Notes: generated by a model from the letters alone, not told the origin. DNA of 64,000 nucleotides from Lepidodermella squamata (GCA_047495785.1 JBLDXI010000007.1:3906001-3970000), one strand, 5' to 3'. Positions 18,483-39,189 are shown, numbered from the stretch's first letter. Made by a program: numbers and translations.

Positions 18483-23626
<5,144 letters not shown>

Positions 23627-23807: not shown

Positions 23808-24754
23808 TCTGGTATTTCGTGGTGTACCAACCCCTGCCTCAAACTCTGTTTTATGCCTCTATTTTTAATTTATACCCAGATTCCTGGATTCCACTGTCTG
23901 TAGACTATATTTCTTGGGAAACATAGCTCCGAAAAATGAATTGATGACTATTTTTGTACATGCAATGTTTCCGATGAACGCAAAACAAACGCTACCTGCC
24001 AATTTTAAATTATCGTGGCGATCAATAATTGCGGTTAGGGTTGAATGAATACTACTTGAACCCCTTAATACTTACAGCCAACTTATGAATTTTTCGCTGC
24101 AAAGCGCTTGCCGTTTGATATTTTACTGATAATTGAAGCAGAAAATGTGTTCATGTCTGCGCATTTTTGTCGCTGATTTCGCAAAATCAGTGATTGTTTT
24201 AAATGGTATTTATTTATTGTGCTGCAACTGATTGCGTCTCGCGAACTTTGTTGATGGTTTTTGTCTTGTATTCGAGCCGCGAGCTTATGTAATATTGCTA
24301 TTTATTGTTGTTATGAAAGTCAATGGACGAGGCTCGTGCTGATATAAAATGTTTGTTGCTCGTTGAAGAAAAAATATATTATACTGAATAAAAGAGAAGT
24401 ACGTGGATCTGGGGTTGATTTTTTTTGAATCCTCAACTTGCGGGTGCCGCCTTTCACAAAATCGAAGCAAAAAGATCCCATTAGTCGTGTATTGTTCCTC
24501 TAAATCACATATATACACACATATATTTTGTCAAGGTTTTGCTGATGCGGAAACTAATGCGGGCCCGGAAACATCATGCAGGGCAAAAATAAATTTTATT
24601 TCCAAGAGAAAAAACAACATCGTTATCCATTATCCATTTGGTTTCCATTTGTTTCAATGTTTGAATGCAACATGGAACATTACGAATCACCTTGTGGTTA
24701 AATCGTCTTGTTAGATCTGATGTTAACTGATAGAGTTGGTCAAAGTCTTAATCA

Positions 24755-27700
24755 TCACAGTATGATGCACTTGGATTCCTTCCTCGCCGCCCGAGGCACA
24801 GCTGCGGGAGGCTCAAGTCTTCCCGGTGGAGGTGCGGGTGCAGGACGTCGCAAGAGATCGTCAAAATAACCGCCAACTTCCCTGCCGATCTGCATGTGCA
24901 ACGGCAGCTCGTGTCTAGCTTGATTGGCCAGTCGGTGAAGAATCTCGTCACCGTCGTAGTACTGAGCATCGTATGCCGCTGGTCGTTGCACCTGAACTCG
25001 AACCGGTCTATCCTCAGGTTTGCGTTCGACAACACTGCTCAAATTGATTTCAATGCCGTTATCCGCTAGGTCCTGTTGAATCGACTGAAGAACGTTCATG
25101 CGAACCTGCTCGTCACTCAGCGTCTTCAGATAGGCGATCACTGCCTGCGACTTGTTTTGCTTTTGAATCCGAAGAAACTCATCGGCTGAACAAAAGTACT
25201 CGTTCGGCGAAGGGTTGAATTCGCAGGTCCGGACGTGAGCATGAGCATCTGCTCCGCAGTCGACAAGGCAAAACCCGCAAAATTTGGCCTGGCAGTTAGG
25301 GTCTGCGCAAGTTAGAGCGAGGCAGCCGTCGAAGTCGAAAAACACCTAGAGGAAAGCGCGAAAAAGATATAATTTGCAGCGGAACTCCTGCTCATATTTG
25401 CGTTTTCCCCATTAAATCATAGACTGTAGCGAAAACGTTGTATACGGCACTACCCGCAAATATTATGATCGTATTAAACCCAGAGCTGGAAATAATTCCC
25501 TCAAATTAAAGTTAGCGTCTCAGCTTTTTTAACTGTGCCTTTAAATGACAACAGCTGAGCATCCCGCAAATACCCTCTCTTTCCTGGGAATGAATAATAA
25601 ACGTCGAAACTGCATACTTTTTTGCAGCGGGGGCATTTAAGGTTGAGAATTTCATTGAGGATATGCGCACAGTGTCGGTGGACGCTGCCGTCCGCAGATC
25701 GAAACCTCACAGCTCGGCAGTAGTAACCTCTGTGGGCAACTCGAGCTGTTTTTGCGTGGTCACTGCAGGACAGGCAGTAGAATTCCTCGCATTGATCGCA
25801 ATAACCAACAGATTCACCGCCATTACGCGTCTCCTCCTCTCCCGCAACCGGCTTTTTGGAGAAGATTATCCTGTACAATAAAACATTTTTTCGTTACGTT
25901 TCGCGTTTCGTTTCGTAATTTTGATTTCAAAGCTTCTCACGCGACTTGGCAAGTCAAAATTACCATGGTTGCACTTGTATAAACACCTGTGTTAAAACAG
26001 GCTGTTTAAACACATGTTTAAACTGTATAAAGTCCGAGGGTTTATACATGTGTATAAAGTCCTAATAAAAATGCCCCAAATTACTTAAAAAATCAGGAGG
26101 ATTCCGCCATAATCGTGAATCTTTTATAGCACTGATGCAAATCTGGATTACTCGCTGCAATTTATCGTATTTGATGATGTGCTGATGTTGCATATCCCTG
26201 AAATTTTTATCATTCACGAAAAACGAATAAGTTTAATTATTCACAAGAGCGCCATACAAACTAATTCTAGGCCTCGTGAGCGTTGCTCTGAAATTTAACA
26301 TGTTTTCGTTAAGATTAAAATGTTAGTGCACAATTAACTTCAAATTCAGATTAAAAATTAGGCCGGCCTGGACGCACGTACCAGAAAATTTCAATTTTGA
26401 AACAGCCTATTGAAAGCCGCCCTATTTTTGTGCGTGCATTTCGTTAGAAGGACTGGAGCATTAGCGCGTGCATCTTCCGTTACAAAGCATTGAATTTTGG
26501 GCATTAGGGCGCGCACCTACGAATGCCTCACTATTTCAAATCAGACCCTTGGCAACCAAAAGGAGTACTGGGATGAACGAAGTACTCACCCGTCACAGCC
26601 TTCTTTTACGCAGCGCCTGTGCCTTTGGGAATTATCCTTCAAAAAACAATCGATCATTTGCCGCTTCAGCTTTGGCATCTCCTTGTCAGTACAGAATGTT
26701 GTAATGTCATTCGTGACCATAAACGCACCGCAGTTTTCCTGCAAGCATTTGATTGGAAGCTGAATGATCTCCTGCTGGAACATGCTCGATAAGCACTCCC
26801 TATGGAATGAATGGCCACACGACACGAGAACCGCATCTGTTTCGTCGCACAGACAAATAGGACAGTTGGAATCGTCCTTTGTCAGCAGTGACTTCTGCTG
26901 AGGCGCCACGTGAACGAGACCAACCTTCAACTGCTCAACAGCACTCTTATCTCCGGTGGCCAGTAGCTTGTTGCCGCTGAAAATTAAATGCAATAGTTTG
27001 TGAGTCTTTTGAAGGGAAGCCGTGGTATCCTGAATTCTCTGCCGGTGTTTAACGGCTATCAATATCGGCTCGTCTAGTACAAGTCCCTCCAGAGTAGCGA
27101 TTAAACGATTTAGTTTGCCCTGCTCCCGATCTTTGCATGCTTCTGACCCAAAAATTTTGATGACCCTGGTTGCGTAGTCCACATGGATCGTTCTTGAAGT
27201 TTTGCAAAGCTCAGAAAGGCGAATAGAGCCGTAATTTGTGAACAATTTGGTCTTTGACGGGTGCTGGAAAACAACGGCTGTCATCATTGGCTGGAACCTG
27301 GATCTAGCGTCGTCGATGTCAATTTCGCCCTTCGAAGTTCGGAAAAACAACACAGCTGGCCTCTGCTTCTGCTCATAATGAGCTTTAACATTAACCTTTC
27401 CCTCGTTGTTAATTTTCGAGACCAAGTCGACGAATTCCGCTTTGCGACTCTCCCAAAGGAATCGTTCGATAGACATTCGCTGCGTGAATTCAAGTTCCAA
27501 CCTAATCGGCTGATAGAAGTTCGGAGGCAGGTGGCAGCGCCGTAGTGCATCCATCACGACCTGAGCATCAGCTGCTTGATCGAACGGAATGTAGACGCAA
27601 CCACGCACAGCTTTTTCCTGGAAAACAATGTCGACGTCATCCTCCTCGCAATCGAAGGGGAGTTCTCCGTTATTCAGCTCTGCGAGGGTATAGACGAATT

Positions 27701-30700
27701 CCCTCGCAGCTTGGGGTGACGCGCCGTTCTTCTTTCGCTTGATGTGGCAGAAATCTGGCTCTGGCAAATAGTTCACTCGAATGAATGACTTGATGTCTTG
27801 CTCGTCGACTTCTTGAGGTAATCGGCCAACGAAAACTAGGTATCGACGGCTTGGATCGGCTGATGGCGTGAATCTTGCACGATGGTATGGCTCATAGTCA
27901 TTAGCCTTAACATCCAACGCCTTCGAAAAAATTTTGCCGAACCTGTTACGCAATGGCCTGAAGCTGTGGTCCAGGAATCTGTTGCCATCAGCAGCTGTTT
28001 TGAAGGCGATAGTACACCCTCCCAGCGATTCCCCTAAAGCGAACGAAATGACGACCTTAACAGTCCTGTTGAGAACAGCAGACGGCTGTGTGGCGCCTCC
28101 AGGGATAGCACGTACTGGGAAACCTTCAATAGTCAAATCTCTCAGATTTTCAAAAGCGAGCCGAGCTTCTTCTCGATTATTGAACATTATCGTCGCTTGT
28201 TTCAGACCTTTGTCGCTTGAAATGCTGCAGTAACGAATTTCGTGGTAGTTCTGTTCCATCAGCAGCTTCAACGAGCTCTCCGTCATCTTGCTGGGAAGCC
28301 CTTTTAACACAATACTGATAAATTGCTCGCCAAGCAGCAAATCGAGAACGCGGCCGCCACCGCACCACGCCATTCGGACATTGCCAACGCAAGCCTCTTC
28401 CACAACATTGCGACACACGTCCTCTTTGTGCGAGTCGATTATTTTCTCGATTTCTTTTCGAACAATCACAGCCGCGGATGGTATGCACCAAGCCAGAAGC
28501 GTACCGCTCTCGTAATCAGCCAGCATATCTTTTATATCTGGGATTTGTTGCATGAATAAATGTTTCTCTGTGCAATTTTCACCCAGTATAATTCGAAGGA
28601 GTACCACGGAAACAGCCATCTTCACCTCTGGCTGCACGAGATTATTACGCAGTTGGTTGTACTTTGAATGCCAAAACCAATAGTCGACTTTCAAGTCTTC
28701 AAAGTCAACGGGCTCTGCCAGGTGGATGTAACACTCGCCAGCACTTTGGAAGTAATCAAGGACAACAATGCAACCGGGCAACTGTTCCCATCTATGAAGC
28801 ATTGACGAGGTGCTTATCTTGGCAGAAATTTTCCCGAGGCCGATTTGGTATTGGCGATTCGGTAGCAGAAAAGCAATGTTGTTAACAAGGGCTTGTAATG
28901 CCATCAAGCGTAGAGCCTTCAAATCATGGGTTACCACCTGCGAGTGTGACCACAAGTCAGAATTTCGGAGAATTCGCTTCAGTTCCTGGGAAAGCAGCCA
29001 AGTATTCACGATCGCTACTGAATTCAGTCCCTTTGATTTAAGCCATTCTCTAAGTTCGGGGGAGTGCGGTTCTTCGAGGGCGAGGAAGGCTTGTAAAATA
29101 TTGACATCGTCTTTGAAAACAGCACGTATCTTCTCGGCCCAAAGATTGATCAACTCGAGCATTGTAATTAGATCACCACATGCGCTGCTATCATTTTCCA
29201 ATGGTTGAAATGCAACTGGTCCTTTGAGCTGCTTAGCCGTGGTCAAAAGGGCGACAAAGAGAACTGCAGATTCACCGAAACCTAAAATGGGAGGGAATCT
29301 TATTACATTGAAGTTTGAAGTGGACATGGCTTTTCCCGGAGATTCCGAAAAATTCATGAGTTTCCAGTTTTGCCTTCACAATTTTCAATTTTCACTAGTA
29401 TAATCACTTGGTATCAACAGTAGACAGCAGTGTGTATAATGTATAATCACTATATTATCAGCTAAGAACTTACCCTGTGAACACGAATGGTGGAATAATC
29501 GGCTAATAATGGGATGGAACGGCAGGGTGGAGCAAACATCACCAATTCTGTTCAATTTTCGGGAGTCGTCAATTAGGCCAAAAAGTCGCAAGCTGGTTTC
29601 TGGTGCTATTTCTCTGAGGCGAGGGTTGACATTGAGAATGGGAAATGTGGTTTGAGCGGGAAAGTGATGCTTCATTAGCTCCAAGATGAAGGCACCACTC
29701 TTCCCATTAACATCGTTCTGCGCTGGAAATGTTTCATATTCTTGAGTTGAATAAAGCCTAACACATAGCCCGCCTCGCTTTGCTCTGGATCGCCGTTGTT
29801 CAGCGGAAGCTTTCGATATCCATTTAGATGTGAAATCAGGTGAAAAATGGCCTTCTGAAAATGAGATTTCCTAAAAAGATTTCAACACCTGTAGTATATA
29901 CCTATGTCATTTTGTCAGGGCTAAATTCACCTCATTGTAGCCGCAATCAATGACGACAGTTAAATTTTGAAACGAAACGGTTTCAGCGCATCTTGTTGAA
30001 AAAATTACTAGCCGCTCGTTTCCAATATTTAGAAAATCTTCAACTTCGTTCAAAGTCGTTTCGTCAGTTAGAACTAGAGGCAAACATTTAGGTTGCATTC
30101 CTCTCAATCTTTCCTCGCAATGCCTCATTGTAAATTCCGCCTTAAATAAAATGGTTTATCTCACTCGAAAATGAAGGAAAATGGGACAAACCTGGGTTGA
30201 ATTGGGTAAGAAGCACAACATATTCCCGTGACGCTTATTGTTTGCGATTTCGTTCGCAAATATTTCAGCCAGTTTACAGGCAGTGATGCAACTCAAATCA
30301 GCATTTCTGTAGACGACTTTCACGGGCATATCCTGGACTCCATAGAGACGAGGTATCTCGATAACAGGGCAATCGAATAGAAAGTTCGAGGCTTTTTTCA
30401 TATTAGTGCGGTTGCACAGAACAACAACTTTTAGCTCTGAGTCGCCGGAGCACAAATCGCGAAGTCGGTGTAGCAGAAGCTCAGTTTCGAGATGACCGGA
30501 ATCCAACTCATCTAAAACAACCACGCCAATGCGAGCTATATCAGAAGCAGTATGGTCGCGCGGGGATAGCTTTTCTAACAACGAAGAAGCCGTCACGCAT
30601 TCGATTTGCATCTCCGGGCTCTTTCGCGAAAATTTCTCTGTTGTCAGGCCTATATGTTTACCGGCATCGTTGATGCCGCATTCGCGATATTGCTTGGCAA

Positions 30701-31865
30701 GATTTTCCGCCATACTCACCGCTGCGATGTCGTTTAGTTGAGTAATAACCACAGTCCTGTTGTAGAACTCAGGCATTTCAGCGAGAATCAGCGGAACGTT
30801 TGTAGATTTTCCAGTGCCACAATCGCCTGAAACGACCAAGAATTGATTGCCAGATCGCAACTTCGTACTAATCTCTTGTCGAACCAGCTGGATTTGCCAG
30901 TGTGGACTTTTCAGGTTCCTGAGGTTGCGGCGTATCATCATTTTACTCAAGTTGTGATCAGGGTGAATCAACGCCTGTATTATTGCAGTATGAACATTAC
31001 TTCTGGACGCTTCTAGAGCTACGACTTCGGCGCTTTTCGATTTCGATTCCATTTCTTGGATAATTCTTTTGAAAGCTACAAAGAAAAATTAAAATATTTG
31101 AAAAATCAAGCAATTGTAATTACAAGTATCAACAGTACTCCTGAGATCCTCGTCGAAAAAGTCGAGCGCTGACATTAGAGCTGATAAACAATATTTGGCT
31201 GCGTTTATATCAACTTTTGTTAACTCGGCTGCCAGTCCGCCATCATCTATCGGCTTGTTATCCTCCGGGTGCCGAAATCTGCACGTTGATTTATTTTCAC
31301 AGGCGCTTCCGTTGCGACATTTCCGATATTCCTTTTTCTGCGGTTTTGAAATAGTTTTTGCTGCCGAAGCTACGCGGATCGACTTGTTCTTGCCCAGCTT
31401 TTCTTCTCTCGAGTGGAGCCATCTGCAGGTCGAAATTTTTTTACATACCGCTCCAGCTTCACATTTGTTTGGCCGATTGCCTGGATGTCTCAGGGTGCAT
31501 TCCAGCTCATAGCAAACATGCGCCTTCGGGCATTGCTCAGCCAAATGACTTTTCTCACACTTCATATTGTTGCAATTGTGAGGCTTTTCGCAAAGAGGGA
31601 GCGATTCAATTTCGGGTGCTATGAAGTTATTTTCGTAAACAGGATGGATTAGCTTGCAGTAACCGTGTCGTGAGCCGCCGAGGGGGCATTTCTGAGGCCG
31701 ATTACCGGGATGCCGTTTCGGGCAGTCATAGTTGCGGCAAAGATGGCCACTGTCACATTTTTCGACGATATGGCCCAGCTGACAACTCATGTTTGTACAG
31801 TCCTTGGGCTTCTTACAGCAATTTACCCTGGCTCCATCCTTCGATATGGCTGTATTTTGTTCCAT
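24755..31865 (-). CDS. Multi-CCCH zinc finger + DEAH-like helicase (HA2/OB) + RRMs + RBR E3 ligase with C-terminal CaaX, ~1917 aa; exons 31865-31139, 31075-30192, 30140-29931, 29870-29474, 29281-26590, 25870-25618, 25345-24755
   Basis: Seven C-x5-C-x4/5-C-x3-H fingers (one degenerate); P-loop GDCGTGKST; VVLDELD; LCFLP; VVIDCG; ISKASAEQRR; RRM-like segments; RING1 CPIC..CGHSFHRECL; IBR; RING2 CPRC..DGCLALTC..FCGFC; ends KCIIL. Six GT-AG introns keep frame (5754 nt). Confidence 0.85.
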
Positions 31866-34298: not shown

Positions 34299-35098
34299 AT
34301 AATAATAATAATAGTTTTATTTAAACCTCTTCTAGACTGAGCGTCATTTACCGTTTCCGGTTTTGAAGAGGGCGAAGGCAGGCAAAGAGAAATTCTTACC
34401 CACCCCCACAGTTGAAGATCTTGCTTTTTCCGAAAAATTCATAGTTTTCAATCGAGTTAACAATCATGCGCCATTCATCTTTTTCAAAAGACACCATTTC
34501 AGCTAGTTGAAAATCGGGTATAATTTTGATTTCAAACTCCTTTTCGCCGGATTTTTCCTTACCTTTTTTCTTTGGCGTTTTGCCCTTCTTATCCGTAGCC
34601 TCATTCTTAGTGCTAGTTTTCTTTTTCCGGCGTAATTCCTTAGTCAGTCCTACTTTAATCAAACTTCTATGCACTCCGTGGATCCATCTAGTTCGGGGTC
34701 GTCCTCTAGGTGCAAACCATCCCAACGGAGGCGTCCAAATATAAATTTTGTTAATTAGTCCTCCCTCGTCGTAGTCACGTGATCTAACAATGTGTCCGAA
34801 GTACCTTAACCGTTGTTTTTCAACAATGCGGCTTACTTCAATGAGACCTCCGCATCGAGCCAGCCTTATGTCTATGTTAGGAATGTAGTCATCCATTAAG
34901 TGGACACCTACTATTGATCGGAGCCAACGATATTCTATAGTATTCAATCTATTTTCTTGGGCTACCGATATGTTCCATGATTCGCACGCGTAAATGATGG
35001 TAGGTATTATAACACATGTCAATACCTTAAGTTTTGTTGCTATGGAAACCTGATTTTTGTTGCACATGAATTTATTCATGGCTCCGAAAACACTGCCC
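34299..35098 (-). mobile_element. 5'-truncated RTE-type LINE with (TAT)n tail and 14-bp target-site duplication
   Basis: ORF 34396-35079 (YACESW..RLRYFGHIVR..RGRPRTRW); TSD GCTAAGTTTTTATA at 34285-34298 and 35099-35112. Confidence 0.9.
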
Positions 35099-38380: not shown

Positions 38381-39189
38381 CTACGCCTGCTTGTTTTTCA
38401 CCGCATCGTCGTAGGTAGGCAACCGCGGCGGTTCGACATTCCAGCCAGGACCGTTCGGCTGTTGCTGCTGGAACACCTGCTGACTGGGCGCGGAGGGCGC
38501 GTAGACACCCGGATACGGCGGCGGGCTTTCGTACAGATAAACGTCGTTCTGCGGCGGCCGCTCGTTGAAAATCGGTGAAACAAAGCCGTACTGCGGGCTG
38601 GCGGGCGGCGTGTAGGCGGGTGGGGGCGCCATGACAATGACCTGGCCGGGCGAGATGAACACGGCCGGCAGGGCGGAGGCGTGGCCTGAGGCGAGGCGGG
38701 CCGCTTTCATCAACGACTCGGCGAATTCGATGGCGCCGCCGTGCGTGAAGTAGAGCTTGAAACGGGCGCCGACGCTCGGAAGACCGCCGCCCTGTTCGGC
38801 GACCAACCGGCCTTTAAGGTAGTTGGAACCGAATACCGGCTGTTCGACGTCGATTTCTTTCAAACAGTGGAATGGCATCGAGACGGAAACGACGTTGTCA
38901 TTGGTCTTCATATTCACGAAAATTACCTGCAAAACAATCGATTATTCGATGATTTTCCGAATGTTAGAGATGATTCAAGAGGGATTTATTACTAGTCAAG
39001 CTGCTGAATCAAGTATTGATGACTTACGCGATGAGTTGTCAGATAAATCCGTCCCTTCTTGCTGCCGTTCAAAGCCTTGTCAGCACTATCAAGATGCAAC
39101 TCGACGCCGTTGTAGTATATGAGAATCAGCTCGCCTTGATAGATACACACGCCTCCAGTTTGCGGCGCATGGGCCGTATTCAATGACAT
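38381..39189 (-). CDS. WBP2: WW domain-binding protein 2 (GRAM + PY motifs); exons 39189-39028, 38926-38381
   Basis: MSLNTAH; GRIYLTTHR|VIF; EQPVFGSNYLKG; FTHGGAIEF; PPAY, PPPY and LPTY motifs. Confidence 0.92.

Follow-up and report, generated by a model that had tools for sequence, protein, structure and literature searches.

A helicase-RBR ubiquitin ligase gene of Lepidodermella squamata ends in a putative geranylgeranylation signal that recurs among tail-bearing relatives

Results

Gene organization and domain content

The sequence analyzed was a 64,000-nucleotide stretch of the Lepidodermella squamata genome (GCA_047495785.1, JBLDXI010000007.1:3906001-3970000), here named the window. Its minus strand carries a gene of seven exons, from about 31865 to 24755, with 5,766 nt of coding sequence (1,922 codons). 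Exon boundaries were placed by GT..AG sites and frame arithmetic, and searches were run exon by exon; the junctions seen in RNA are that between exons 4 and 5 (run X3) and the last intron (run X1).

Exon 1 (31865-31124, read from the first ATG, with a further 5' exon possible) encodes an array of CCCH fingers of the C-x6-C-x5-C-x3-H type, for which Pfam matches were sub-threshold only. Exons 2 (31075-30192), 3 (30140-29931) and 4 (29870-29474) together encode an SF2 helicase core (29474..31075), with predicted Walker A (GDCGTGKST), motif II (DELD) and motif VI-like (QRRSRAKR) sequences; taken singly, these exons gave only sub-threshold Pfam P-loop matches. Exon 5 (29281-26590) contains the helicase-associated region, an RRM (RRM_1, 1.7e-10), linker domains and RING1. 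The latter is a C3HC4-type RING with a Pfam score above cut-off (zf-RING_UBOX, 27.7 bits with a cut-off of 25.2; zf-RING_2, 26.9 bits). Exon 6 (25870-25618) encodes an IBR-like Cys/His module with the spacing CDQC..CLSC..H..C, which had a weak B-box-like Pfam match and no PF01485 match, followed by the first CxxC of RING2. The IBR was matched in the relatives P0011, P0155 and P0086.

The last intron (25346..25617, 272 nt) has its donor GT at 25617-25616 and its acceptor AG at 25347-25346. Downstream, the coding part of exon 7 (25345-24758) comprises the second half of RING2, with the DGC catalytic-Cys motif, and a post-RING2 helical domain (..DLADNGIEI..), both within 25040..25345, and then a tail. 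RING2 is assembled across the intron, since the start of exon 7, VFFDFDGCLALTC.., continues the ..KCPRCKK that ends exon 6. The intron-split pattern has CPRC on one side and FDGC-x4-C..C-x2-FC-x2-C..H-x-H..C on the other, and its Cys/His columns are near-invariant in the alignment of relatives (A2). No Pfam match was obtained with the terminal exon. Its AlphaFold2 model has pLDDT >90 for residues 5-115, covering RING2 and the helical domain, and neither a PDB sequence-profile search nor a Foldseek PDB search of the model returned anything significant for the post-RING2 domain.

Three other coding regions of the window were recorded. A multi-exon gene on the plus strand (20982-23626) encodes a classical-PKC-like protein, with a C2 domain, a kinase domain and a C-terminal tail; this gene and the helicase-RBR gene are convergent, with about 1 kb between their 3' ends. 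Upstream of the helicase-RBR gene, in an AT-richer stretch, a 227-aa ORF on the minus strand (34396-35079) resembles the C-terminal region of a retrotransposon protein and has a Lys-rich tail. Another minus-strand ORF (38381-38932) combines several PPxY-like motifs (PPPAYTPP, PPPYPGVY) with a Gln-rich end; its product is a possible adaptor of WW-domain (NEDD4-type) ligases.

Assignment to the helicase-RBR family

By sequence, the window protein is assigned to the helicase-RBR ubiquitin ligases, the "Helicase/Plant I" RBR subfamily of Marín, which is ancient, occurs in unikonts and bikonts with a patchy distribution, and was lost in many animal lineages (PMC2904391). Exon 5 gave a collinear BLASTP match to the 1,801-residue protein P0072 over 869 columns (E=1e-37), and the helicase exon matched the DEAD region of the same protein (E=7e-18). 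Helicase plus RING and/or IBR domains were found in P0072, P0155, P0011, P0002 and P0003; of these, P0072 and P0003 also have HA2 or OB. The first-pass annotation had named a helicase-RBR protein, and the helicase core, RING1 and RING2, collinear with full-length members, bear that name out. A word-index search with residues 1500-1801 of P0072 returned the query itself as sole hit. The same type of search with the terminal exon by itself returned nothing, as its length filter would predict, and has no bearing on the existence of relatives.

A phmmer search of the terminal exon against 1.84 billion representatives detected 1,567 relatives at E<=1e-3, 437 of them at E<=1e-10; the C-termini of the best 150 were inspected. 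Homology is limited to residues 1-100 of exon 7, that is, to RING2 and the helical domain, whose last residues form a motif resembling DLxDLGIxL. About two thirds of the best 150 relatives have at most 12 residues beyond this conserved domain. In P0011, P0155 and P0008 the RING2 plus helical end domain occurs twice in tandem, ahead of a repeat-rich tail and a terminal CCIL. Such a duplicated catalytic module, as in these sciarid helicase-RBRs, is unusual among RBR ligases.

The C-terminus of the window protein

Past the conserved domain, the window protein has a Pro/Ala/Arg-rich tail of 94 residues (24758..25039). The minus strand at 24790-24755 reads GCG GCG AGG AAG GAA TCC AAG TGC ATC ATA CTG TGA, for A (24790-88), A (24787-85), R (24784-82), K (24781-79), E (24778-76), S (24775-73), K (24772-70), C (24769-67), I (24766-64), I (24763-61), L (24760-58) and stop (24757-55), with a second in-frame TGA directly after. 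The box Cys-Ile-Ile-Leu (24758..24769) closes the terminal ORF (24755..25345, 196 codons); its Cys, at codon 24769-24767 and residue ~1919 of the ~1,922 in the model, lies exactly four residues from the C-terminus and is the sole Cys of the tail. Directly upstream is a basic patch, R-K-E-S-K (24770..24784); the ten residues preceding the Cys include four K/R and one E, so that the patch is mild and interrupted by Glu. In the AlphaFold2 model the tail has pLDDT 52-75 (residues 120-196), falling to 52-56 with no secondary structure in the last 30 residues, which predicts an exposed, flexible C-terminus. The C-I-I-L-stop end after basic residues, as described in the first-pass annotation, is present both in the genomic sequence and in RNA contigs.

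Transcript evidence for the 3' end

The RNA evidence consists of Logan contigs, not reads, from the runs X1, X2 and X3. In X1, where the SMART cDNA oligo was present as a loose end and depth was zero within an intron at 25892-26488, a joint at 25345/25618 skips 272 nt; its CT..AC on the plus strand corresponds to GT..AG on the minus strand (cut +2). Two X1 contigs (24736-24863 and 24629-24750) show zero differences over the CaaX codons and the stop, and X1 contigs were also found within exon 6, at 25622-25810. X3 was recognized as RNA by a spliced contig at 29279/29472 (GT..AG placement 29281/29474), the junction of exons 4 and 5, and an AATAAA (24600-24595) lies 11 nt before the end of its contig 24584-25206. 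A 3' UTR of 24584..24754 was accordingly annotated, with this contig ending at 24584.

Contigs of all three runs pass uninterrupted through the tail and stop and cover the box without differences, and no skip joint inside the terminal exon (24584-25345) was found among the contig joints listed. The X1 and X3 contigs of this exon therefore speak against a different terminal exon, and the last intron, the CaaX codons and the stop are confirmed in cDNA-type contigs from two studies or runs.

X2 also contained a second contig population at 24919-25061, at about equal depth and with many differences in the tail-coding region; none of the variants of this type listed falls on the CaaX codons. Two of its variant positions, compared by eye, differ from the paralogue described below, and the population may represent a second, diverged haplotype or a copy missing from the assembly.

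CaaX ends among tail-bearing relatives

Canonical CaaX ends were found in 7 of the best 150 relatives: Pseudolycoriella hygida P0011 (2,161 aa, CCIL), the sciarid-fly Logan contig P0008 (374 aa, CCIL), Pythium oligandrum P0002 (2,258 aa, CTIA), Heterococcus P0117 (382 aa, CCIM), the metagenomic P0049 (230 aa, CCIS) and P0086 (323 aa, CLIQ), and P0150 from an ENA assembly (130 aa, CMIN). A follow-up search added P0155 of Bradysia coprophila (2,162 aa, CCIL), whose last 512 residues share only 56% identity with P0011. CCIL was kept in P0011, P0155 and P0008 despite divergence of the fly tails (..RPLQPQKKSECCIL vs ..PAPQPPRRDCCIL). These ends share a pattern of Pro, basic residues and then C-a-Ile-X, to which the window end, VPRAARKESKCIIL, conforms. 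Conservation of the CaaX end is observed at the family level (CCIL in flies, CTIA, CCIM, CCIS, CLIQ, CMIN); the nearest relative, like most of the family, has neither the tail nor the CaaX box.

A single CIIL is little proof of function, because C-aliphatic-aliphatic-Leu ends are expected a few times per proteome by chance. Against whole-protein composition, Cys at -4 was non-significant (9 observed, ~7 expected). Helicase-RBR proteins are rich in zinc-finger cysteines, and the test was therefore redone on tail composition, using 51 representatives (50%-identity clusters from the best 150) with a tail of at least 20 aa past the conserved domain. Cys makes up 1.2% of tail residues, yet it stands at -4 in 7 of the 51 (P=2e-6); a C-x-I-x end was found in six, where 0.02 were expected (P about 1e-13). 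Tail cysteines in this set accumulate at -3 and -4, with none at -1, -2 or -8 to -12. The a2 residue is Ile in 7/9 Cxxx ends of the best 150 relatives (P=8e-9), or in 6/8 with the flies merged (P=1.5e-7). Ends of the same type are enriched in tail-bearing relatives far above chance.

Other recurrent ends were noted among tail-bearing members of the best 150, namely UBA-like ends (..GGDVMAALELLT) and aromatic ends (..GYNRFF, ..GYNRLF, ..GLGNFF, ..VRGFW, ..FGFGWW), which suggests that C-terminal targeting modules are interchangeable in the helicase-RBR family.

Distribution of the trait and an in-genome paralogue

The nearest relative found, P0005, is 54% identical in the domain and ends in ..EVGC right after it, with an AATAAA of its own. 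The Pythium insidiosum relative has no CaaX box. On a domain tree built by a quick method from 103 columns, CaaX ends are scattered, with seven changes, at least five of which are forced by supported branches. The first-pass annotation had proposed convergent membrane targeting; the scattering fits this idea, but the tree is too poorly resolved to set it against an old trait with many losses, and it is compatible with repeated gain as well as with a single gain and later losses.

A paralogue (L002, G000:C7:4316353-4319937) lies on the same contig, about 387 kb away, and is ~85% identical in the last exon. Its tail is homologous and lacks the CaaX box. It has three in-frame TAGs, its tail carries insertions of 15 and 32 nt, and its large exon is frameshifted; it is probably a pseudogene. 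It was dropped as a conservation test for its in-frame TAGs, 32-nt insertion and frameshift, and the loss of CaaX in it is uninformative because the paralogue is broken. A retroelement-like ORF adjoins it (L002 16-243).

Prenylation and CaaX-processing genes

The genome contains three Prenyltrans beta-type genes (PF00432), two PPTA alpha-type loci (PF01239), one ICMT (PF04140) and one Rce1-like gene (PF02517). This set would match FTase, GGTase-I and RabGGTase plus CaaX processing, at the level of the set and not of individually assigned beta subunits.

Discussion

A lipid-anchored ligase as the preferred reading

The window protein terminates in a box that agrees with the GGTase-I rule: a1 and a2 are aliphatic and X is Leu (Ile or Met being also accepted), in line with CaaL/I/M as the targets of this enzyme (PMC11152559). 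CIIL, the box of human G-gamma-12, belongs to a set of four sequences for which geranylgeranylation by human GGTase-I was complete in a yeast Ydj1 reporter, and it was modified there even without FTase (PMC11152559). The description of CaaL as a geranylgeranylation signal in the first-pass annotation is thereby upheld for the exact tetrapeptide, and prenylation of the window protein in vivo appears likely from its sequence.

Our preferred reading, with a probability of roughly two in three, is a helicase-RBR ligase that has acquired a ~94-residue tail, is geranylgeranylated, and has its catalytic end held on membranes. GGTase-I would attach a C20 geranylgeranyl group to the Cys at -4, Rce1 would cut off Ile-Ile-Leu, and ICMT would methylate the new C-terminus. 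The lipid and the nearby Arg/Lys would then hold the catalytic (RING2) end on the cytosolic face of membranes, with the flexible tail of ~94 residues acting as a leash. As in CaaX proteins generally, the single Cys and the weak basic patch of the window protein would favour endomembranes over stable plasma-membrane binding. In the flies, the CC pair could add palmitoylation.

The main alternative is that CIIL is the chance end of a fast-evolving, low-complexity tail, either unmodified or modified without consequence, on a ligase that is soluble like most of its family. The scattering of the trait, with at least five changes, would be expected under it, as would the termination of most relatives at the DLxDLGIxL domain, the tail-less nearest relative and the few chance CaaL ends of any proteome; the paralogue tail without the motif would also fit, but that copy is broken and hence uninformative. 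What such a chance end leaves unexplained is the strong C-a-I-X enrichment in tail-bearing relatives, the retention of CCIL across sciarid genera despite tail divergence, the position of the only tail Cys exactly at -4, and the identity of CIIL as an optimal GGTase-I substrate, and we regard it as rather unlikely. It is very improbable that the CaaX form is one isoform of several, alternative splicing or polyadenylation also giving a tail-less or CaaX-less soluble form so that targeting is regulated and not constitutive: the same switch exists in ZAP-S/ZAP-L and OAS1 p42/p46 (PMC8568172, PMC8357416), and minor isoforms are compatible with evidence made of contigs and not reads, but there is no skip joint inside 24584-25345 among the joints listed, and in three runs the contigs are unbroken through the tail and stop.

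Comparison with known systems

The geranylgeranylated, membrane-held ligase of the preferred reading has partial counterparts. The Helicase (Plant I) RBRs, such as those of the Arabidopsis DEAH11/DEAH12 type, share the DEAD/DEAH-type helicase core and a RING1-IBR-RING2 far downstream (PMC2904391), whereas the window protein adds the N-terminal CCCH array, DELD in place of DEAH, and the 94-residue CaaX tail.

The long isoform of PARP13, ZAP-L, is a CCCH-finger protein that is CaaX-farnesylated and resides on endomembranes, its CaaX box being essential for antiviral activity (PMC8568172). It is like the window protein in its CCCH fingers and C-terminal CaaX, a comparison of features and not of homology, and differs in its PARP-like domain, in the lack of both helicase and RBR, and in recruiting E3 ligases without being one. 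The ZAP-L box is CVIS and is farnesylated. OAS1 p46 has a CTIL box, through which an RNA sensor is targeted to endomembranes in a geranylgeranyl-dependent manner (PMC8357416). Its box is of the CaaL type, CTIL and CIIL behaving alike in the GGTase-I reporter (PMC11152559), but OAS1 p46 is a nucleotidyltransferase, neither ligase nor helicase, and its CaaX is isoform-dependent. Both precedents had been invoked at first pass, and both hold according to the respective papers (PMC8568172, PMC8357416).

Among ubiquitin-ligase components, FBXL2 also uses a CaaL membrane anchor, and its geranylgeranylated CVIL was tested beside CIIL (PMC11152559). FBXL2 is a substrate adaptor of SCF, not a thioester-forming RBR, and has no RNA-related domains. 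The RBR ligases RNF144A/B and RNF19A/B are held on membranes by a C-terminal transmembrane helix, not by a lipid, and lack a helicase. A literature search returned no paper joining RING-between-RING with CaaX and prenylation, none on a prenylated or lipid-anchored RBR ligase, and none addressing what helicase-RBRs do in animals. The ligase subfamily and the targeting signal are known parts; what is new is their combination, which recurs across eukaryotes.

Implications for the helicase-RBR family

From the recurrence of these ends, some members of the helicase-RBR family are probably membrane-tethered. That the window protein serves RNA surveillance or immunity at membranes is a reading that we hold to be unlikely at present, and an antiviral role of the window protein is speculation. 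A still broader and likewise improbable proposal is that tail-bearing helicase-RBRs form a eukaryote-wide class, unrecognized so far, of lipid-anchored, RNA-directed ligases. A disordered leash with basic residues and C-a-Ile-X at its end would have arisen several times, or been inherited from an ancient ancestor, in animals, oomycetes and algae, and would place a helicase-coupled E3 on endomembranes, where RNAs associated with membranes, for example viral replication complexes, might come under its surveillance. If true, the class would be a one-polypeptide analogue of the ZAP-L/TRIM25 arrangement.

Should the motif be unmodified, the finding would shrink to an ordinary lineage-specific tail. 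The recurrent CaaX end provides a first concrete cell-biological prediction for helicase-RBRs, that their catalytic end would be tethered to membranes, in parallel with ZAP-L and OAS1 p46, in which CaaX-dependent positioning decides antiviral potency.
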